A stretch of DNA of 64,000 nt, taken from assembly GCA_025594325.1 (NCBI GenBank), contig JANHCV010000005.1, forward strand, positions 310,001 through 374,000, in the 5' to 3' direction. Positions 840-22,367 of the stretch are shown piece after piece. Both the position numbers and the translations under genes were made by a program. Each line of letters starts with the position of its first letter. Within the stretch, counting starts at the first letter, position 1. The notes below the pieces were generated by a model that was not told where the DNA came from, did not search any database, and saw only the letters and a program-made list of their open reading frames with translations. The stretch comes from Blastocladiella emersonii ATCC 22665. Lineage: Eukaryota; Fungi; Blastocladiomycota.

Positions 840-1448
840 ATGGTGCAGAGCCGTCAATTCACGTTGAAGACGGCTTTCCAGGAAGCTGCGTTGAGCGGAA
901 TCGAGGACAAGTGCGAGGAGGGAGGCGACCGCTTCAGCACCTTGCGCTCCGGCCATCTTCTCGCGGATGTCGAACGTTCCTCGCCCGAGGCGACTGTCCG
1001 TAAGCATGCGAAGATTCACTCTGCCCAAACCCTCTCAACTCGACCTGTGCCGTTCCAGTGGTTCACTGGCACTCCTGACCCCGAGTATCGCAACCTCTCA
1101 GACAAAGAGCATCGCGCTCGTATGTGCGAGTCGACGGTTCTCGGGTGGATTTTCAGCATTGGAAGCGTGCGGCTCATTGCGCCTCTCTTTGGCTCGACCA
1201 ATGATCCCATGAAACCCCTCAGCTGGTTGCTGCCCGTCTTGGCAGTCCTCGTCATTGATTGGCTTGTCATGATCGGGTTCATGCTCTTCATGCAAGATGA
1301 ATTCATGACCGCCCTACCGGTTCTACTTAGTATTTCGCTCGTTTGTCTCCAGATTGCGGCCGACCTCTATCTCATCTCGAAACAGATCGTCATTGCGAAT
1401 GCGAGTCGCGCCTTGCACTCGAGCTCCAAGCGCATCGAAGATGTCTGA
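840..1448 (+). CDS. Lineage-specific multi-pass membrane protein (202 aa)
   Basis: Open ORF with 3-4 hydrophobic segments in the C-terminal half. TRPVPFQWF..LSDK..R..M......FSIGS.RLIAP aligns by eye with the ORFs at 48824-49515. Confidence 0.55.
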   Translation: MVQSRQFTLKTAFQEAALSGIEDKCEEGGDRFSTLRSGHLLADVERSSPEATVRKHAKIHSAQTLSTRPVPFQWFTGTPDPEYRNLSDKEHRARMCESTVLGWIFSIGSVRLIAPLFGSTNDPMKPLSWLLPVLAVLVIDWLVMIGFMLFMQDEFMTALPVLLSISLVCLQIAADLYLISKQIVIANASRALHSSSKRIEDV

Positions 1449-2017
1449 CCCGCGAAGCCGTGGCCCATCACGGTTTGTTGATAATTATCATCATGTTTTT
1501 TGCTCCAATCCGAATCTCGTCGCATCGTCAGCTCCACGACCCAATTCCCGTGCTCGCTGCCATTCTGTTGAGCCTCAATTCCGCCGCACGCCATCCTCTC
1601 TTATCGCGTGGGACGCTTGGGTTACCCCGAAACTGCGTCAAGGTCCATCGTGAGGTTGATAAGAGCGGGGATGGTCGCAGTCGCGAACTGTCTCGCATGT
1701 GGCGCAGCGCGTCTCGCATCTTCCGCGTGGGCTCCACGTGACTGAGTTCAAGCGTCTCGCACTGATCGCGGAACGCGGGCCGTTTTTCTCTCGCCCTCTC
1801 ACCTTGTAGGATGGGGCCGATTGGAAGGTAGGGTTGCGCGATTCGGTTGAGTGTGCTCACATGAACGAGGAGCACGTCGCGCTCGATTCGCATGCGAGTT
1901 CAAGGTCATGTAGAGAAGAGTGTGCGTGATAAACTAAAGCGGGAACAAACAAAAACAAAAACCGTCGCCTTTCTGGACCAGGCGTGACGAGCGCGCTCGC
2001 TCACCGCCGCGCCCACT

Positions 2018-10440: not shown

Positions 10441-12095
10441 TCAGAGCAGCGCAACAGCGACCCACGCGAGCGCCGCGACGACGAGCGCGGGACTCGACTT
10501 GGCCGCGGCCACGACCCACCCGCCTCCCGCGCCCTCCTCGCGCGAGCTCCACAGCCGGAGCGACCCGGCGCCGCTCGTCCCGTTCCCAAACGTATTGCTG
10601 CTGTTCCCCGTCGTCGTAGGCTTGCTGCTCGAGCTCGTCGCGGTCCCCGTCGTCGCGGACGGCGCCGTCGTCACGCTCGGCTCCATGGTCGACCGCGGCG
10701 ACCCGCACACGGCGAGCGGGCCGGGCCACGTCCCGTTGTTCGCCTCGGCCGCCCACACCTGGTTCAGCGCGTACCACACGAACGACGAGTACCGCGACGT
10801 CGCCGTCAGGTTCGTGCCCGGGACCGTCGCGATGGCTTTCGCGGCGAGCGCGGGCGCAGCGGCCGACTCGAGCGTCGCTGTTGTCGGGAGGAGCTGTGGC
10901 GGGATCACCCCGCGGCGGGCGCGACCGCCCGTCTCCGAAGCCACGGTCGGGTCGGCCATGATCGCGCCCGCGGCGGCAGCCGTCGTCGTCGTGGTCGCGG
11001 GCATGCTGAACGAGACGGCGCGGCACGGCAGGTTCCAGTGGTCGGCCGAGAGATCAAACAGGCCGACGCCCGCAAACCCGGCCGCGACGGACGGCAGGTT
11101 GCGCCAGAACGCCGGGTCCGTGACGGTCGTCGCGTTGACGAAATCGCCCGACATGGCGTCAAAGTACGCCTCGCTGCCGTACCCGAACCCGGGCACCGTG
11201 ACGACCATGGCCTTGCCCGCGGTCTGCGCGAACGTCGACCACGCCGCGGCCGCGGCGCGGAACCCCGCCGGGTTCGACGTGTACGAGCACGACGTCGACG
11301 ACGCGAAGAACACGTTGAGCGTGTCGATCAGCGGCAGCGCCGCGCTGCCCGCCGACAGCAGCCGGTCCGCGTACACGGGGCCAAAGTTGGCGTCCGGGTA
11401 GTCGCACCGCGGGGATACCGTCACGCCGAGCGCGCGGTTCGCGGCCGCGGCGAGACGTTTCAGCTCGACGAGGAACGCAGGGTACCCGGCCGCGTCGTTG
11501 TTGCGCATCGCAAAGTCGATCCCGTCAAGTACCGCGGTCCCGAACGGACGCTGCGAGTGGGTCCCACCGAAGAATAGGTTCCACATGTTGCCCGCCACGG
11601 TCACGGCGCGGTCGTTGGGCAGCGAAGTCATGGGCGCTACACGTAGCGGGGGCGTTAGTTGGTGCTTCTTCGTGGTTTTCGGGTCGCGGAATGCGTACAC
11701 AGCGAGAGGTACACCTTCTTGCCGAGCCCCTGGCACACCTTGACGCCGTCCTCGATCAGCGGGCACCGGAGCAGCGCGAACCCGCTCGTCGGCTGCTGCG
11801 ACTTGTACCCCGGCAGACTCGCGTTGGTCGGGAACCCGCAGTGCTTGGAGAAGTCGATCCCGGGCAGCCCGTCGAGCGAGAGGAAATCGCGCAGGAACGC
11901 GAGGTGCACGGCCGTGACGGGCGTTGTCCGACAGAACTCGGCCAGCGGCAGCTCGGTCGCCTTGTCGTCGCGGTACAGGTTGCCCGCCTTGTTCTGGCCC
12001 CAGTACCCGATCAGCGCCGGCGACGCGGCGGCCGCGGCGTGCGCGGTCGTCGCCGCTACTGCGAGGAGTGTGGCGAGGAGTAATATGAGTTTCAT
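10441..12095 (-). CDS. Secreted, probably GPI-anchored GH18 class III chitinase-like protein lacking catalytic acids; exons 11699-12095 and 10441-11636
   Basis: Signal peptide, IGYWGQN, MWNLFFGG, RPFGTAVLDGIDF (hevamine/Cts1-type). Ser/Thr-rich stalk and hydrophobic C-terminus. 62-nt intron at 11637-11698. Confidence 0.85.
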
Positions 12096-12459
12096 GGTCG
12101 TCTAGTGTTGAGCGGAGAGGAAGCGTGATTGTCGAGGACGCGCGAGGTGAAAGTGGAGACACTCGCGCGAGCTGAAACGCGACGCGGTTTGGGAGACACG
12201 CTGGGATCACATGATATCTCGACGCGTCCGCGAGTGAAGGAAAAGTCAGTGGATTTTACTTGAACCACCTAGACGCTTCGCGTCTGGTCTTCAATCGAGG
12301 GCTAAAGCCCTCCGCCACGTTGGAGCACGGCACACGCGGGAGGTTTTGTACCGCTGACAGTCGCGCGTCATTATGGAGTCGCATCTCTGTTCCCATCACC
12401 CACCAAAGTAACTGAAAGCAGCTAAGTCTACTTTATGACACTACAAATGAAATCTTACA

Positions 12460-15400
12460 CTAAATCTCGCGAAGACTCTTGCTCTCCCGCTGCTCATGCA
12501 ATTCTGGAGCGCGCTTCTGCTCGCGCTTACGCTCGCGATACCGCCTTGAGTACTCTTGGTCGCGCGCCTTCTGCTTCGCCTCCTTGTCGCTCTTGATCTG
12601 GCGGTGCTCTTGCATTTCGTGGCAAAAGAGCTCCGCGACTCGGGGGTGGTTTTGCGCAACGGTTTGTCCGTGAGCGAACGCGCCCTCAGTCAACACGTCT
12701 AGCGCCTGGAGCCGCAAGTCTTCGGCCACGGCCCGCGGATCAGGGACCATGGCGTCGTACACGCTGTCCGGGATCGGATGGAGAACCCACAGAAACGCGC
12801 TCTCGCGGAGCCGCGAGAGCGCAACGTACAGCGACGACCTGTTGATCGATCCAGACGAGCCAGCTGGGCACGGATCCGTCAAGATGATGGCGTTCTTGGT
12901 CACGCCTTGGACCCCGTGCACCGTCATCGCAAAGGCGGGCACGATTGGGAACTGCATGATCTTGACCTTTTCGTGGTCCTTGTACTGCTCGTGAGTATCG
13001 AAGTTCTTGACCATCTTGGCGCACAGTGCGCTGGACTCGGGTGTCTTGAGTTCGGTTCGCTCGCGCGACGTCATACCGCCCTCCTTGTAGAGAAAGTCGT
13101 CCGAGTGCACGGCGAACGGGATGACCGTGTCTGGCCAATCGGCCGGCATGCCAGGAAACCGAGGGCCAGGCGGCGCGTCGGGCAGGTCGACCCACACAGT
13201 ATGTGGCTCCCGCGATGGGCGGTACATGCGCGAGCAGGTCTCGGTAAACGTCGTACCCGGAAACCAGTCGATGTGGTGCACGACGCCGATAGCGCCATTC
13301 GCGCACCCCTTCTCGACGCACTGGTTGACCTTGACGCGCAATTCCATGCCGACAAAGACCTCGAGGATGGTTGGCAAACGAGTGATCGAGTCGGGCTCCT
13401 CGGCGAGACGGAACAGGTCCCTTTCGCCAATCGGGAGGCGGACGGTTGCGCCGTTTCGCTCCTTCTTGCGCGTGATGCTGGCCTTGATCTGAAACACGAC
13501 GCGTTCTGGGACCGCAGCGGCGAGCCGCGTGTACAGCAGGTTGAAGGTGTGACGCGTGTAGTTGTCGGGCGCAATGACCGTGAGCCCGCGCGTCTGGAGG
13601 ATCTCCTTGAGCGCGTTGTTGCCCTGGTCGTCGCTCAGCTGGCGCACGCGAGCGGTCGTGCGCGAGTCGAGCAGGCGGCACAACTCGTCGGGGGCCTTGT
13701 CGAGGCGGAACGCGTCGAGACACCTGCCCCATGATGGGTCGTTGACGAACCGGTTGCTGCGCACGAGTCGAACGACACGTCGGGCGCGCCAGTACGCGAG
13801 CTGGCCCGAGTGCTTTTTTTTTTCGCGCCCGTGGTGTCGTGCGCGAGCAGCCGCTCGAAGAACGAGTCTGGCGCATCGTCGAGCACCTCGGGTAGCTGGA
13901 ACAGCGCCGTGCCGTTCACTGGTGGAAGCTGCAAATGGTCGCCGGCGAGCATGACGATGCAGCCGCCAAACGGCTCGTCGCACCGACGCAGGTCGCGAAG
14001 GCTCGCGTCGACCCGTCCGAGCAGCTGCGTCGCACATGGAGAACTCGTCGATGGTCACGGCGTGACGTCCTTGCCACGCGCTGGCGACAGCCGAGTCGGT
14101 GCGGAGGCGCTTGATGTCGGGGCTGAGAGTCTCCCCCTTGAGCGAGAGCTGGAACGCGGCGTGGATGGTGGTACCGCCAATGTTGGCGGCCGCGATACCC
14201 GTCATGGCCATGACCATCATCATGCACTTTTCGCGGTTCCAGGACGCGAGAAAGTACCGGATCGCGTCAATGACGCGCGACTTGCCCGTGCCGCCCGAGC
14301 CGGTGAGAATGATCGGCGAGCGAGCCTTGCTAATGGGCGGAAGCGAGGCGAGAGCTGGTGCGTTTGGCCGGTCGCGGCCCGACGCGAGGGCGCCTGGATC
14401 CGATGACCCGGCGGCCTCGGCGATACCGCTGTCGCCGCCGATGAACGTGGCGATGAGCGGCATGAGGAAGAGCACGAACGCGCGGTGCTGCTCCTTGTTC
14501 AGGTTGAACTTGAGCGAAACCTGCGCGAGGCTCGCGTACGCGGGCGTGTGCTTGGTGCGCTGCTCCGTCTCCGTCCACTCCTTGCCGCGAGTCGCGTGGT
14601 CAAAGTTGTTGAGCGAGTCCGCAGCCTTCATGACGAGGAACCGCTTGCGCTTCGCTGCAGATTCCGTTGATCTCGCGGCGAAGGTACCGCACCAAACGTC
14701 GGCGGCGGGTACCTCTGGAGCTTCTGGACCGTCCTCAACGGCGTTTTCGGGATCGACGCCGATCTGCGACTCGGCAGCAGCGTCTGACGTGGTTGACGCG
14801 CTGATGAGCGGCGACTGCCCGCCTTGCGGAGCGACAGGAGCGGTTCCAGCAGCGGCCGGCGCTGCAGATACGGCGCTGCGGTGCTGCGCCAGGAATTTTT
14901 TCAGCGTGTTCGCCGAGATGGGCTCCTTGAGCGTCGTCGGTGGGACGGCCGCCTTGACGTCTAACGGGCACTCTGGAGGGAGGCGCAGGTGGTCGACCAG
15001 GTCTGCAGCAGCACCAGGGACCAGCGCGTCGATCACCAGCTTGAAGTTCTGCTCGCTAACGGTGGGCGCGACCTCGGCACCAGCACCGTTTATGGCGTTG
15101 TCGGCAATGACCGTATCGAGGGCAATGTCCTGCTGCAACTGAGTGAACATGGTCCATTCTGCAGTCGGGTCCTCGTTGGCGGTCGCCTTGGCGCGCGAGC
15201 TTGACGCGTTGCGGTCGCCGTCGCGAGATCGAACGAACAGCTCGCCGCGCTCCTCCTGCGGCAGCCTGGACGAGAGCTCGGCGTTCTCGCGATCGCGGCA
15301 CTCACGGTACGCGCGCGCACCGTCGAGACTGAAGTAGTACTCCTGGGCGTACTCGAGGTGGTTGAGCGCAGGGTCGCCGGGTTGGAGGCCCTCCTTGAAC

Positions 15401-15985
15401 GCCTTGAACTTGGCGATCGCCGAGCCATTCTCGTCGAGAATGCCACTCGAGACGCGGAAATGGCGGAGCAGCAGCAGCGCCATGCGCGAGTACTTTTCCT
15501 CAGACCCGGGCACGTCCCCAAAACTTGCGCGGGTCGGGCATGTGCGGGCCGGCGATTTTGGGCACGACCTCGACGATGTTCTTGCGCAGCTCGTGCGTCT
15601 TGGCCAGCGGGTGGTCGGCCATAAAGGACAGCCTCGTGCCGGGCGGCATGTCGGCAGCTGGTCCGAGTTCTGCTTGCGCGGGCACGACGCGCCCGCCGTT
15701 GGCAAGGACCTCGCGCATTTTCGGCGGCATGTTGACGCGCGACCACGAGGAGATGAACTCGTACCACGACAGGTTCTCGAGCTCGGGCGGGCGGAACACG
15801 TGGTCGTGCAGCGCGACGTTGAGCATCGGCTTGCCGTCGACGCTGATGGTGCTCGCGATGCACTCGACATCCTGCTCGGTCACTTCGCCAGCAGCGACGC
15901 CCACGAGGTCGAGCCACAGCATCGCCTGGTACAGCAGCAGCGGCGCGAACTTGTGCGAGAAGATCCCGGCGGCCGCCGTGTGACT
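12460..15985 (-). pseudogene. Helitron-type Pif1 helicase, frameshifted at about 15530, 14020 and 13820
   Basis: Helitron linker motifs SHKFAPL and HVFRPPELENLSWYEF. Helicase motifs ILTGSGGTGKS, AMTGIAAANIGGTTIH, IDEFSM, AGDHLQLPPV, KGCANGAIG, QFPIVPAFAMTVHGVQG, LYVALSR are spread over several frames. Confidence 0.85.
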
Positions 15986-15994
15986 TCATTGCGC

Positions 15995-16927
15995 ATGTGC
16001 AGCCGCAGCAGCAGCAGCAGATCATCACGCCGGCGCCGCCGCCTTCGGCGCCCACGGACCGCCATGCCCCCGCCGGCCTCGCACTTCAACCCGCCCTCCA
16101 CCCCCCTCTTCCTCGTCGTCGGCGCCCGCCTCTTCGTCGACGCCCGCCGTCCCGCCGCAGCAGCAGCCGTCGACGGCCGCGTCCTTCAACCCGCCGTCGA
16201 CCCCCTCTTCGTGGTCGGCGCCCGCCGTCCCGCCGCCGGCCCACCATCACCATCACGGTGGTCGTCGTCGGCGCCCGCTCTGCCGCCGCCGGCGCACCAT
16301 CACGGCGGTCCCGCGGGCCGCAGCAACCGGTACGGCGCCCGCCTGCAGGAGTGCATCCCGCCGACCCCAGCCACGCAGGTGTCGGGGCTGACGCTATCCT
16401 CGCCCGTGCGCCAGCCGCGGGTCGTGTTTGACGTGTCCTACGAGGAGGGCGACTCGGACCCCGAGTTCACGACGCGCATGGCGGGGATCCTGCGCGAGCT
16501 CAACGACGGCGTCGCCTCGTCGTCCTCCTCGACGACGGCCGTGCAGACCGCCGCACCGCAGATCACCAACGCGTCGTCGTCGTCCTCGACCGCCGTGCAG
16601 CCCGCCGTTTCGCGGGTCGACGCGACCGTCGCCTCGTCGTCGTCGACCTCGACGCTCTCGACCGCCGTACAGCCCGCCGGGCCGCCGGTCGGCTCGTCGG
16701 CCGCGTCGTCGTCGTCGTCGACTTCGAGTGCGACAGTCGCGCTCGCGGCGCCCATCATCGAGGAGGCGGGCACGACGGATCGCGAGGTCGCGTCGGCCAC
16801 GGCCGTTCCCGCTGACGCGCCCAAGCGCACGGCCGCCATGGCCGCCGAGGAGGGCGGTGACGACGACGAGGACGAGTTTGAGGCGGTCCCCAAGCGCCGC
16901 CGCCGCCGCCGCGGCGGCCGCAGTTAA
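15995..16927 (+). CDS. Low-complexity opposite-strand ORF inside element 1, with an acidic and basic NLS-like C-terminus (probably frameshifted)
   Basis: Ends APKRTAAMAAEEGGDDDEDEFEAVPKRRRRRRGGRS*, similar to the end of the matching ORF in element 2. Confidence 0.4.
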   Translation: MCSRSSSSRSSRRRRRLRRPRTAMPPPASHFNPPSTPLFLVVGARLFVDARRPAAAAAVDGRVLQPAVDPLFVVGARRPAAGPPSPSRWSSSAPALPPPAHHHGGPAGRSNRYGARLQECIPPTPATQVSGLTLSSPVRQPRVVFDVSYEEGDSDPEFTTRMAGILRELNDGVASSSSSTTAVQTAAPQITNASSSSSTAVQPAVSRVDATVASSSSTSTLSTAVQPAGPPVGSSAASSSSSTSSATVALAAPIIEEAGTTDREVASATAVPADAPKRTAAMAAEEGGDDDEDEFEAVPKRRRRRRGGRS

Positions 16928-17409
16928 CTGAACGACGTCGTGTTCCTCTCTCCACTTCCTCCGTTTCCCTCTTTTGTTGTTGATGTCCTCTCATTCACAA
17001 TATTTGTTTTTTTTTTGTTACTATCGCGATTGACTGCAGGCGAGAGAGCTTGGTGGTGGGAGACTCGGACGCGTTGGTTATATCCCGTGAAACGCGTGAA
17101 ACACGTGCGTGACGCACGTGGGCCAGGGAGACACGTCAGATCCCAAGGGCGCGCGTCGGCTAGGCAAAAATAGAGGGCTTTAGCCCTCGACTTTTACGTG
17201 TTCGCGGCACCGAGTCATCAAAAGATTATACTTGAGGCACCTAAACGCTTCGCGTTTGGTTTTCAATCGAGGGCTAAAGCCCCCGCCACGTATGGTACAC
17301 GACTGGTGGAGGTGCTGTCGCGTGCGTCCCGCACAGGAGATTTAGGTGATCGAGCTATGGAAATCGTGCTATTGATGGATTGGATGATGGAATACACTAC
17401 GTTAATACT

Positions 17410-20160
17410 CTACTGTGTTTTCTGTTTCTTGGCGTTCTGTGAGCCGTCCTCGCCTCCAGCACGTTTCGTGGCCAATCGCCGAAACCTTGCGTTGAGAGCA
17501 TCTGACGCGCGCTTGGCGACTAGCTTCTCAGCCGCGTGCTGGCGCGAGAAGAGAATCGCGTCGTCGAAGAGCTTGGCGATGCGCGGGTCGCCTGGTGCGA
17601 TGGCTGTACCTTGATCGAAAGCGGTCTCGGTCAGCTCGTCGAGCATCTGGAGCCGCTTGTCCTTGGCCACTGCGAGTGGATCCGGCTTCAAGGACTTGAG
17701 CACGGCTCTTGGGATCGGCTGAAGCACCCACAGGTACTTTGAGCGACGAAGCCGCGATAACGCCACGTACAGGGAAGCGCCGCTGATGAAACGCTCGATG
17801 CCCGCGGGACGCGGATCTGCCAGGGCGATGGCGTTCTTGGTCACGCCTTGAACCCCGTGGACCGTCATGGCGAAGGCTGGCACCATCGGGTACTGCTCGA
17901 TGTGCGCGACGACATGATTAGGATACATGCTCCTGTTGGTTTTGGTGTTGTTGACACAGAGCGGGAGCGAATCCCCCGTTGTGCTGACGACCCGCTCTCG
18001 CGACGTGGAACCGCCCGCCATGTACAGGAAGTCCTTCTTCTCCACGGCAAGCGGGATGACCGTGTCAGGCCACGCGGCCGGCATACCCGGGAAGCGAGGG
18101 CCACGAGGAGCGTCGGGCATGTCGATCCATACGTTGAGTGGAGCGCAGGATGGCCGGTACATGTTGGACGCGGTTCGCGTGAACGTGGTCTCGGGCTTCC
18201 AGTCGATGTGGTGCACGACGCCAACCGCACCGTTCGCGCACCCCTTTGCTACGCACTGGTTGGTCTTGACGCGCATCTCCATTCCGACGAAGAGCTCGAG
18301 GATGACCGGCAGTTCAGTCGTGGTTTCTGGCTCTCCTCCGAGGCGGAACACGTCCTTGTCGCAGATGGCGACGCGTTCACGCGTGCGACGCCTATCACGC
18401 GGCCGCGTGATGTTGCCCTTGATCTGGAACACGATGCGGTTCGGGTTTGCTGCTGCAAGCCGCGTGTAGAGCAGGTTGAAGGCGTGGCGCGTGTGTGGTT
18501 GTCGGGCGCGATATCCGTGAGTCCGGGCTTCTTGAGGATCTCCTTGAGGACGTTGTTGCCGTTTTCGTCGACCTGCTGCTGAAGCTGAGTGTTCGTACGC
18601 GAGTTGATCAGGTCGCACAGCGTGTCCGACGCCTCGACGAGGCGGAGCGCGTCCACTTCGTTGCCCCATGGTGGATCGTCGACAAATCGGTTGCTCTTCA
18701 CGAGACGAACAGCGCGTGTAGTGCGCCAGTACGCGACCTGGCCTCGATCCACGTGCTCGGGGACCGTCAATTGATTTGACGTCATGCGCAGGTAGAACGA
18801 GTCCGGCGCGTCGTTGAGCACGGCGGGCACCTTGTACAGGGCATTTCCGTTGACGGGAGGCAGCTGTAAATGATCGCCAGCGAGCATGACGATGCACCCG
18901 CCGAATGGTTCGTCGCACCGCCGCAGAAGGCGCAGGTTCGCGTCGATACGGCCGAGTAAAGTCGCGTCGCACCTGGAGAAGTCGTCGATGACGACGCCGA
19001 GACGCCCTTTCCACGCGATGGCAACCGCAGGATTGGTACGTAAACGGGCCACGTCGGGGCTGTTTTCTTTTGGCCTTGGCGAAAAAGAGAACGCGGCGTG
19101 GATGGTCGTAACGCCAATGTTGGCGGCCGCGATCCCGGTCATGGCCATGACCATGAGGCACTTTTCCCGGTTCCAGGACGCGAGAAAGTATCGGATTGCA
19201 TCGACGACGCGCGACTTGCCTATGCCGCCCGAGCCGGTGAGGATAATCGGCGTCCGGTCCTTGCTCATGGGCGGGAGGGCCGTGGTGCGGAGTGCATGTT
19301 GGACGTCGTCGCGGCCCAACATGATCACGCTCTGCTCGGCCGAGGCCGCAGCGTCTGCGATACCCGCGTTGCCGCCGATGAAGGTGTCGATGAGCGGCAT
19401 GAGGAAGAGCACGAACGCGCGGCGCTGCTCTTCTTTGAGGTTGAACTTGAGCGAGACCTGCGCGAGGCTCGCGTACGCGGGCCTGTGCACAGTGCGCTGC
19501 TTCTCGTCGCTCCACTCGTCGCCGCGTGTGTCGTAGGCAAAGTTGCTGATCGAGTCCGCGGCCTTGGTGACGAGGAACCGCGCGCGCGCGTCAGGATCCG
19601 TTGGCGTGGTCGTGAAGGCGCTGCGCCAAACGTCGACGGCTGGTCCGAGTTCTGGTTCGGGCACGTCGACGGCCATTTCCGGGTCGATACCATGCTGAGA
19701 TGTGTTTGTCGAGGCTCCAGATGGCACTGCGGGAACAATACCGATCATGGATGGCTGCCCGGGCCCGGGAACGACAGGTACGGCGCCGACATCCGCGGTC
19801 GGATGACCTTGAGCCGCGGCAGCGCATAGTTGAGCCATGATTTTCTTGACGTCAGTCGGCGAGATGGGCGTCTCGAGGTACGGCGGCGGCGGCGCGGCGT
19901 TGACATCGAACGGCTGCACCTCGGGGAAGAGCAGGGTACCCATCATGCCGTCGCCCATTCTAGGTATCAGCGTAGAGGTCACGCTCTCGATGCGCTCGAG
20001 GTTCGCCTCGGTTTCGCCGTCGTTGGCCAGGATGCGCTCCACGTCCGAGTTGACGATAGTCGGGTCGAGAACAATGTCGTTCTCCAACTGACCAACGACG
20101 CCAAGCACGGGTCCGGCTCGCGCGACGCTGACGGCGCCGCCGCGGCCGCGGTTCCTCTGC
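17410..20160 (-). pseudogene. Helitron-type Pif1 helicase, 5'-truncated, with a +2 frameshift at about 18490
   Basis: GSGGIGKS, VIDDFSRCD (degenerate Walker A/B), AGDHLQLPPV, QYPMVPAFAMTVHGVQG, LYVALSR. An extra CA in a CA run splits ORFs 18249-20336 and 17410-19515. Confidence 0.85.
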
Positions 20161-20163
20161 GAC

Positions 20164-20987
20164 GTGAACGCGTCGGACTCGTCAGAATCCGACGACGACC
20201 CGGGCTTCCCCGGCGACGAGGCCTTCACCTCGGCAGGCGTGCCGCGCACGATGAAGGGCATGCGGGCCGAGCTTAACGAGGCCACGGAGGTGTACCACGA
20301 GTGCATGCGCGACGGCCGCGAGAACTTTGTCAACAACCTCGCCGCGCACCAGGCCGCCCGCGCCGCGGCAAACGGCGTGGCATCGGGCGCCGCTGGTCAC
20401 GGTGTGCAGCAGGTCGCCGCCTCGATAGCCGCGGAACCCGCGGCGCAGCAGCTCACGATCCAGCAGCCCGTCGACATCTCGGCCGTCGTCGTCTCGCCCG
20501 CCGCGGCGCCCGTGACGCAGGAGCACGCGATCCAGCCGCCCGCTGTCGTGTCGCCCGCCATCAACTCGCCCGCCATCAACTCGCCCGCCAACACCAAGAA
20601 CGCCGGCGGCAAGAACACTGGCACCAAGAAGTACGGCGGCTTCCCGAGCTGCGCGAATCCCATTTGGACGCACTCGTTCATCGCGATCGGCAGCATCGAC
20701 AAGATCGTCGTGGGGGTGCCGGACTCAAACTCCGTGTCGTCGGGTGCGACATGGACGACGCGGCCGCAGCTGCGGCTCCGACAACCGCGGCGCTCGCGGC
20801 GTGCACGCCCGCCGCCATCGGTGACGACCAAGCCGGTGTCCCGACGTCTACCGCCAACGCGACGAAGCGCACGGCGGCGACCGCCGCCGCGGCCGCCGAG
20901 GAGGAGCACGAGGAGTGCGTCGTCAACGACGAGCACGAGGCGCAGCCCAAGCGGCGCCGCAGCGGCCGCCTGTCCTCGTCGACCTGA
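20164..20987 (+). CDS. Opposite-strand ORF inside element 2 (frameshift at about 20760), with an NLS-like C-terminus
   Basis: Ends ATKRTAATAAAAAEEEHEECVVNDEHEAQPKRRRSGRLSSST*. Contains a 15-bp tandem repeat encoding PAINS. Confidence 0.4.
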
Positions 20988-21574
20988 TGCACTCGCTCCC
21001 GCTCCGACTCTGTTCATTCCCCTCGCGCAGACTCGCGCAGACTCTTGTTTCCTCCCGCACAAAGATATACTTTTCGTTCTCCTACGTTCACATCGCTCCG
21101 ATCCTCTTGAACTCAGAAGCTCGCGAAGGCACGCGAGTCGGTGCAACGCGCTCCGCTCGCCCTTGAGTGGTTGGCGCCGCGCGGCGCTTCCGCGGGTTGG
21201 GCCGAGGCCGATCACGTGCAAGGCCAGGACGCGTTGCGCCACAGCAGTCACATGAGAAACGACGCGTCTGTCACGCGTTTTCGGGTCGCTCACGTGGATG
21301 GCGCTCACGTGAGCGTCGGCACCCTATCCGGCAGCGACCCGGTCTAGAAAGAAGGCTTTAGCCCTCGATTCAGACGCGTTACCGTTTCGGCAAAGGCTGA
21401 AATGAAAAATCGCGTCAGAACTTCGCGAACTGTGACCCGACTTACGCGGTCCATTTCAGGGTTAGAAGCGCGCAGTGGAAAATGGAAGGAGTATTGTAAG
21501 CAAATTTGCGAAGCAGTCTTGGCAGGTTCTGAAAGTCGTCACGAGCGCCCAGCTGCGTGAAATGCAATGCATAC

Positions 21575-22367
21575 ACGGTCCCGCAGACGGCGCGCACGGC
21601 GACGAGCTCGACATCAAGTACTCGGTGCGCGCGCCATGGACCTGGCCAGCGAGCACGGCCACGTCCACGTTCTGGACTGGTGGTTCGCGCGCTTCCCGCC
21701 GGGTGAGCTCAAGTTCACCAAGGACGCGCTCCGTTTTGCGAGCAAAAAAGGGCACCTCGCTGTGCTCGACTGGTGGTACTCGCACCGCGACTCGCTCGCG
21801 CTCACGTACAACAACCGCACCATCGACGCGGCGAGCGCCGAGGGCCGCGTGGCCGTGCTCGACTGGTGGCTGGCGCGGCGCCGCGAGCTCAAGCCCGAGT
21901 ACTCGAACTACGCCATCAACGAGGCCAGCATCCGCGGGTGCATCGCGTCGCTCGACTGGTGGTTCGCGCACCGCGGCGCGCTGCGGCCAAGGTACACGAC
22001 GGCCGCGCTCGACGAGGCGTGTACCCGCGGGATCGCGCGGTCGGTCGAGTGGTGGTTCGCACACCGCGATAAGCTGCCGCTCAAGTACACGGCGTTCGCC
22101 ATGGACAACGCGAGCAGACGCGGGCACGTCGCAGTTCTCGAGATCTGGCTCAAGCACCGCGACGCCGTCGAGCTCAAGTACTCGCAGCAGGCCATGAACG
22201 ACGCTGCGGCGCGCGGGCACGTCAACCTGCTCGAGTGGTGGCGCGCGTCCGGGTTGCCGCTCAAGTTCTCGCCGGCCGGGATGCAGGAGACTCGCGTCAA
22301 CGCGGTGCGCGAGTGGTACGCGCAGCACGAGGCCGAGTTGCTTGCCCGACGTGTCGATACGGAATAG
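21575..22367 (+). pseudogene. 5'-truncated ankyrin-like repeat protein with about 7 repeats of ~31 aa, each carrying a W-W motif
   Basis: Repeats of A(M/I)DxASxxGH(V/L)xVL(D/E)WW...L(K/P)Y. Frameshift at about 21630 and no recognisable start. Confidence 0.75.

Follow-up and report, generated by a model that had tools for sequence, protein, structure and literature searches.

Two head-to-tail copies of a multi-copy transposon family with Helitron2-type ends in the fungus Blastocladiella emersonii

Rolling-circle elements of the Helitron2 type (HLE2 in the nomenclature of HELIANO, PMC11417382) carry terminal inverted repeats that are short and asymmetric. One of them, the 5' repeat, is located at the very terminus and starts with T; its pairing with bases further downstream gives a hairpin, by which the type was defined. 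The other, at the 3' end, is subterminal and precedes a second hairpin, and compensatory substitutions that maintain the stems were reported in the same work (Bao and Jurka 2013, PMC3627910). T is found at both junctions, and target-site duplications of variable length occur occasionally (PMC3627910; PMC11417382). These features are shared by the family of two elements, copy 1 and copy 2, that lie head to tail in a stretch of the genome of Blastocladiella emersonii ATCC 22665 (Fungi; Blastocladiomycota; NCBI GenBank assembly GCA_025594325.1, contig JANHCV010000005.1, positions 310,001 to 374,000 of the forward strand). This whole stretch of 64,000 nucleotides (nt) is referred to below as the window. 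The differences from the described type concern the position of the 3' repeat, which is 42 nt from the end here against 20–30 nt in the original description, and the absence of Rep from the copies, which are likened to Helitron2 by their end layout. With a probability of about 0.85, the window pair is interpreted as non-autonomous, internally deleted Helitron2-type rolling-circle elements that inserted independently, head to tail.

Fungal counterparts are known from Fusarium oxysporum, where Helitrons have inverted repeats that fold into GAA-loop hairpins (Chellapan et al. 2016, PMC5148889). FoHeli1 and FoHeli2 resemble the present elements in their fungal host, length (~5–6 kb), TC start and hairpin-forming 5' inverted repeat (the loop being GAA in FoHeli). 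Their 3' repeat lies 38–51 bp from an A/T-rich terminus, similar to the window family, and they insert beside or into one another to give composites. However, the termini are unrelated (TCAGCC-GAA-GGCTG in FoHeli, TCGAGGGCT-AA-AGCCCTC here), FoHelis encode a full Rep-helicase that the window copies do not, the present host is reported as an early-diverging fungus, and an extra open reading frame (ORF) is located here on the opposite strand. The non-autonomous Helentrons DINE-1/HINE (Thomas et al. 2014, PMC4067079) also have subterminal inverted repeats and a 3' stem-loop, form clusters and arrays, and belong to a system in which, as here, non-autonomous derivatives outnumber any autonomous partner. 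Short length and a lack of coding sequence distinguish DINE-1 elements, the partners of which have an endonuclease, from the elements described here, which are 4–5 kb long and keep a helicase gene, with no endonuclease seen. Helraiser (Helitron1; PDB 7LCC) shares the Rep-helicase architecture with a Pif1-like helicase, the 5' TC, the 3' hairpin and the lack of a target-site duplication, but it has no inverted repeats, ends with CTRR, and its helicase is distantly similar (E 7e-11).

The initial annotation of the window had suggested that a hairpin inside the inverted repeat might be undescribed. Both PMC3627910 and PMC5148889 provide precedents; since hairpin repeats and compensatory stems are already published for Helitron2, the terminal hairpins cannot be claimed as novel. 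No account of the Helitrons of Blastocladiella was found in the literature, which contained only passing mentions alongside Blastocladiomycota, so the further suggestion that the elements are undescribed in this lineage may hold, though only in the sense of a new family.

Both elements are located on the minus strand (Table 1). The positions initially assigned to them were off by only 1–2 nt, every sequence motif listed at that stage was found in the window, and the gap between the copies, given as ~35 bp, measured 34 bp. On the element strand, both copies start with 5'-TCGAGGGCTAAAGCC(C/T)TC. At the 3' end, the inverse repeat is followed in both by the 9 nt TTGAARACC as a spacer, by a stem of 6 bp closed by a GAA loop, and by an 18-nt tail that ends with CAAGTAWAAT. 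The inverted repeat with the GAGGGCT-AA-AGCCC core and the second stem-loop outside the 3' repeat, noted earlier, are present in both copies, and the core motif occurs eight times in the window against 0.04 occurrences expected by chance. In single-stranded DNA folding, the last 63 nt at the 3' end gave -16.2 kcal/mol in copy 1 (z -4.6 relative to shuffled sequence) and -13.2 kcal/mol in copy 2 (z -3.5). The proposal that the inverted repeat is itself a hairpin was borne out for the 5' end of copy 1 (-5.6 kcal/mol, z -3.2) and not for that of copy 2, where a single substitution degrades the hairpin (-2.1 kcal/mol, z -0.1). The DNA identity of the two copies is 72–86% in the helicase regions and 90% in the last 59 nt, in agreement with the earlier impression that the helicases have diverged and the termini are conserved.

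Table 1. Features of the two elements, with positions in the window
Feature	Position	Strand	Description
Copy 1	12253-17190	-	Subfamily 1, 4938 bp, Rep-less Helitron2-type; ends obtained from an alignment of 23 complete copies whose flanks differ
Copy 1 3' end	12253-12294	-	Spacer, GAA-loop stem, 18-nt tail ending CAAGTAAAAT
Copy 1 3' hairpin	12271-12285		AGACGC-TTC-GCGTCT; 6-bp stem
Copy 1 subterminal 3' inverted repeat	12295-12312	-	TCGAGGGCTAAAGCCCTC
Copy 1 Rep-helicase gene remnant	12463-15985	-	Linker and Pif1-like helicase, no Rep; PIF1 6.4e-12, partial domain
Copy 1 opposite-strand ORF	15997-16927	+	Ser/Pro/Ala-rich; KRTAA-acidic-PKRRR tail
Copy 1 subterminal palindrome	17102-17120	.	CACGTGCGTGACGCACGTG; contains two CACGTG
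Copy 1 5' terminal inverted repeat	17173-17190	-	GAGGGCTTTAGCCCTCGA; element strand TCGAGGGCTAAAGCCCTC; folds as hairpin
Spacer	17191-17224	.	34 bp; from copy 2 3' end to copy 1 5' end
Copy 2	17225-21368	-	Subfamily 2, 4144 bp, Rep-less Helitron2-type
Copy 2 3' end	17225-17284	-	Inverted repeat at 17267-17284, then hairpin, tail CAAGTATAAT
Copy 2 3' hairpin	17243-17257		AAACGC-TTC-GCGTTT (element strand AAACGC-GAA-GCGTTT)
Copy 2 Rep-deleted helicase gene	17413-20261	-	Starts MPFIVRG; PIF1 1.4e-18
Copy 2 opposite-strand ORF	20251-20987	+	Two frames; tail homologous to that of copy 1
Copy 2 subterminal palindrome	21302-21315	.	CGCTCACGTGAGCG; CACGTG at element positions 58, 73, 151
Copy 2 5' terminal inverted repeat	21351-21368	-	GAAGGCTTTAGCCCTCGA; one substitution, weakens its hairpin

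The genome, which is small and GC-rich (32.65 Mb, 21 contigs), was searched for further members of the family. The terminal 15-mer gave 158 matches, and the full layout of repeat, spacer and hairpin identified 90 3' ends; reverse-read controls of both patterns gave no matches genome-wide. From 37 extracted loci, 23 complete copies were defined, all with precise identical ends and unrelated flanks. The genome scan that had been proposed for the window motifs thus showed that, genome-wide, helicase ORFs are consistently flanked by paired ends. The window family is a genuine transposon family of many copies, its ends arranged as in Helitron2, and is represented by ~90 3' ends. Its subfamilies 1 (~4.9 kb, exemplified by copy 1) and 2 (~4.1 kb, exemplified by copy 2) have a helicase and no Rep, while subfamily 3 (1.7–1.9 kb) has no convincing ORF and is represented by extracted loci only, for example, L018 and L025. 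Copy 1 has eight full-length relatives with an identity of 94–99.98%, and the identity within a subfamily, as among the subfamily 2 copies, is 93–97%. Two pairs of copies are nearly identical: copy 1 and L001, located 37 kb apart, have one difference in 4938 bp, and L006 and L007, located 300 kb apart, have four differences in 4861 bp, the flanks being different in each pair. The simplest reading of such pairs would be recent transposition.

The stem pair in which the 3' hairpins of the window copies differ had been regarded as a compensatory double substitution and a sign of selection. According to a hand count over the 90 ends, 55 have G:C at this position, 31 have A:T, and in four the two bases do not pair. 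Among 26 distinct ends, 93% of the cells form standard pairs compared with 27–43% after shifting the partner columns by 1–3 places. However, a clear two-sided change is seen in one stem pair only (16 G:C and 8 A:U in the distinct ends), and its states track the subfamilies, which means essentially one compensatory event. The covariation therefore appears consistent with a selected stem and is not strong evidence when taken alone. GCGAAGC, the core of the loop, is known as an unusually stable DNA mini-hairpin.

Remnants of Rep were found in other loci of the family. In L032, which has subfamily 2 ends, a frame opens with NMDARFLMSFGTSIVAFYVTKYSTK and includes the tyrosine motif AFYVTKYSTK, then the linker, then the helicase; the motif aligns with AFYITNYISK, the two-tyrosine motif of the C2 Rep-helicase described below. 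A decayed HUH region is located upstream of a subfamily 1 3' end in L017 (PF14214, 28.7 bits, below the cut-off of 28.9), where the tyrosine motif, likewise decayed, and the beginning of the linker are retained as well, and a diverged second copy of the decayed region is present in L031. Since the Rep motif of L032 is in frame with the linker and the helicase, the family evidently descends from a true Rep-helicase Helitron. The breakpoints of the Rep loss differ between subfamilies 1 and 2, indicating that separate internal deletions removed Rep. Relatives were collected by an exhaustive protein search against a library of 1.84 billion representatives; among the nearest 46 proteins outside this genome, Helitron_like_N was present in 11 and DUF6570 in 8.

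Judging by their sequences, both window copies are defective and non-autonomous: they cannot move alone because they have no Rep and their helicase is frameshifted. In copy 1, the frames of which were read against the intact frame of L004 (G000:C21:870042-875992), frameshifts are located near 15520, near 14035 and in a run of ten T residues (13814-13823). The unbroken 1139-codon frame of copy 1 is not the true reading, as the shifts near 14035 and at the T run compensate each other; together they garble helicase motif III, and the shift near 15520 severs the upstream linker. In the helicase of copy 2, the frame shifts once, near 18490, and Walker A (GIGKS) and motif II (DDFS) are altered. A frameshifted helicase was observed in most copies, both window copies included, and L004 is the only subfamily 1 copy seen with an uninterrupted helicase frame. 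Its ~1000 uninterrupted codons, within a frame of 1129 codons, pass through all helicase motifs (PF05970 5.4e-26), with motif III reading GNHLQLPP in L004 and GDHLQLPP in the other copies. A tract almost identical to subfamily 2 extends across the Walker A region of this subfamily 1 element (residues ~470–620 of the 1129-codon frame), which indicates that exchange between copies occurs, by recombination or gene conversion. The ratio of nonsynonymous to synonymous substitution rates (dN/dS) of the helicase between the subfamilies was 0.38–0.43, versus 1.07–1.45 for the same columns out of frame, indicating that the helicase frame was under purifying selection while the lineages diverged.

Analysis of the insertion sites showed that a target-site duplication is absent in 22 of the 23 complete copies. 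T is invariant at both junctions and could equally be part of the element or of the target; in L020, two elements abut directly and have one T in common. This arrangement of T would fit the T-T insertion rule reported for HLE2 (PMC11417382). A purine precedes the 5' T in 22/23 copies, whereas no constraint is seen on the base following the last T. The search for empty sites yielded one, at window positions 1392-1790, with an identity of 86–91% to the flanks of L001 (G000:C17:284444-290383).

Several observations weigh against the interpretation of the window pair as Helitron2-type elements. One copy, L001, is flanked by a direct repeat of 9–10 bp, (T)CGCGARCTG, as comparison with this paralogous empty site confirms, and the duplication complicates the use of the site for defining the target. 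No Rep domain was found in either window copy in a Pfam search of the ORFs. The autonomous copy with an HUH Rep that the initial annotation had proposed to look for was not found; besides the remnants described above, only a different family came to light. The Rep model gave 12 matches genome-wide with one open frame (1481 codons, C2:727-733 kb), and no intact Rep-helicase ORF was identified in the assembly among these matches and the longer elements inspected. The C2 element (G000:C2:727237-733000; L013/L030) represents a second Helitron2-type family with different ends. Its 5' repeat is TCAGCTGTAGCTTTA with a GCGAAGC mini-hairpin, and its 3' end consists of the inverse of TCAGCTGTAGCTTTA followed by the hairpin GTGTGTGC-GCA-GCACACAC. 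The C2 helicase is 29% identical to that of the window family, and its C-terminal part contains stops and a frameshift. In the comparison with the PDB, the helicase of the window family was most similar to cellular and bacterial Pif1 (~1e-20), with Helraiser at 7e-11; these scores appear to leave the Helitron2 placement neither confirmed nor refuted. In addition, gene conversion between nearby copies of the same chromosome could account for the near-identical pairs.

By analogy with Helraiser and the IS91-type HUH transposases, the following course of transposition may be proposed for the Helitron2-type elements. A Rep nuclease supplied in trans would nick the 5' end beside the hairpin-forming repeat, and a 5'-to-3' Pif1-type helicase would displace the element strand. 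The subterminal 3' repeat and the GAA-loop hairpin would then mark the position of the strand cut, ~18 nt further on, after which the single strand would be circularised and inserted between two T residues, as a rule with no duplication of the target site. None of these enzymes would be provided by the window copies themselves.

Attraction of new insertions by resident 3' ends would account for the 34-bp spacing of the window copies. Head-to-tail junctions of mixed subfamilies recur in the genome, with spacings that differ at most of them, from -5 to +34 bp: in addition to the window junction of copy 2 with copy 1, spacings of 11 bp in L004, 6 bp in L003, 0 bp with the shared T in L020 and -5 bp with a truncated tail in both L019 and L035 were recorded. 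Simple arithmetic based on ~90 3' ends, ~70 5' ends and 32.65 Mb gives ~0.004 junctions within 40 bp expected by chance, far fewer than were recorded. We infer that a resident 3' signal would attract the transposase; in Fusarium, insertion of Helitrons beside resident ends has been described (PMC5148889). A more elaborate proposal, in which resident 3' ends, with their repeat, hairpin and tail, are beacons mistaken for the cleavage site, so that insertion would occur only a few bases away from them, and a Rep-deleted, helicase-only lineage under selection is moved by Rep encoded elsewhere, is doubtful. If true, the helicase-only lineage would split the transposase between two kinds of element.

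A related possibility is a two-part system in which the helicase of some Rep-less copies is still functional and works with Rep from another element. The low dN/dS of the helicase, with out-of-frame controls above 1, would agree with it, but this signal of selection may predate the loss of Rep, which occurred independently in subfamilies 1 and 2. Recent movement is suggested by the near-identical pairs, and the genome's only open Rep frame has a broken helicase; on the other hand, frameshifts are present in most copies, including those of the window, and the uninterrupted frame of L004, complete in its helicase motifs, carries the deviating motif III. Taken together, the two-part system seems unlikely.

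It is very unlikely that the elements are Helentrons in the strict sense, that is, endonuclease-encoding relatives of Helitron2. The end layout is Helentron-like and T is present at both junctions (PMC11417382), but no Exo_endo_phos (apurinic/apyrimidinic, AP, endonuclease) domain was found in the 1129-codon frame of L004, the window ORFs or the 46 nearest relatives, and only ~60 residues follow the helicase; this assignment was rejected for lack of the endonuclease domain. The initial label, Helitron2/Helentron-like, is retained for the Helitron2 end layout and dropped for the strict Helentron.

A cut-and-paste inverted-repeat DNA transposon with a captured Pif1 helicase gene is highly improbable, even though an 18-bp inverted repeat bounds each element and the 9–10 bp duplication flanks one copy (L001). 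The 3' repeat is not terminal, as 42 nt of conserved hairpin and tail lie outside it in 90/90 ends, and the other complete copies, 22 of 23, are free of target-site duplications. No DDE transposase domain was detected in any ORF searched, and the reading frame of the Rep remnants continues into the helicase; the cut-and-paste transposon was rejected on these four grounds. Local tandem duplication of a single element, which the same orientation and head-to-tail order at 34 bp might suggest, is scarcely credible and was rejected, since the two copies belong to different subfamilies (72–86% DNA identity; 4938 versus 4144 bp), each has its own dispersed near-relatives at 93–99.98%, and the other mixed-subfamily junctions have varying spacers (0, 6 and 11 bp).

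As for the remaining features of the elements, the opposite-strand ORFs of both copies matched no Pfam family. According to tblastx analysis of the 5' regions, they can be aligned credibly in the last 76 residues only (~30% identity), a tail with KRTAA, an acidic stretch and PKRRR, the rest being low-complexity matches. In copy 2, this ORF and the helicase gene start head to head, with their ATG ends overlapping by 11 nt. Subterminal palindromes reported near both 5' ends were found at the positions given in Table 1. CACGTG is located at element positions 71 and 84 in 8/8 subfamily 1 copies, and at position 58 plus 73/151 or 160 in subfamily 2. In the coding copies examined, this motif is clustered within 160 nt of the element start (element positions 55–160; window 17040-17140 and 21210-21320), with a chance expectation of ~0.08 per 230 nt and diverged sequence around the motifs. 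The cluster could be a candidate binding site for the transposase or a host factor.

A distance of 158 bp separates the 3' end of copy 1 from the start of a gene with a signal peptide (MKLILLLATLLAVAA...; window 11655-12095, minus strand), and the element pair thus occupies the upstream region of this gene. Copy 2 is directly adjoined at its 5' end by six tandem units of 93 nt (31 codons) at window 21645-22200; their translation seems to consist of ankyrin-like repeats in which an LDWW motif is conserved. Outside the window family, at least six further PIF1-domain loci with a similar score and profile positions 2–158 were noted (G000:C20:391838, C6:897451, C5:1168465, C21:688150, C19:912716 and C1:850591), which may belong to another helicase-bearing repeat family. 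The genome's own Pif1 candidate (C11:51.5-59.5 kb) is divided among several ORFs and has long inserts.

The current understanding of Helitrons is unchanged by these findings. They add a well-bounded Helitron2-type family with ~90 3' ends and three subfamilies in Blastocladiella emersonii, whose precise ends permit clean repeat masking and gene annotation. The clustering of insertions at resident 3' ends can be used to study target choice in rolling-circle transposition, and the Rep-less copies with a selected helicase can be used to study the survival of such elements after loss of the nuclease.

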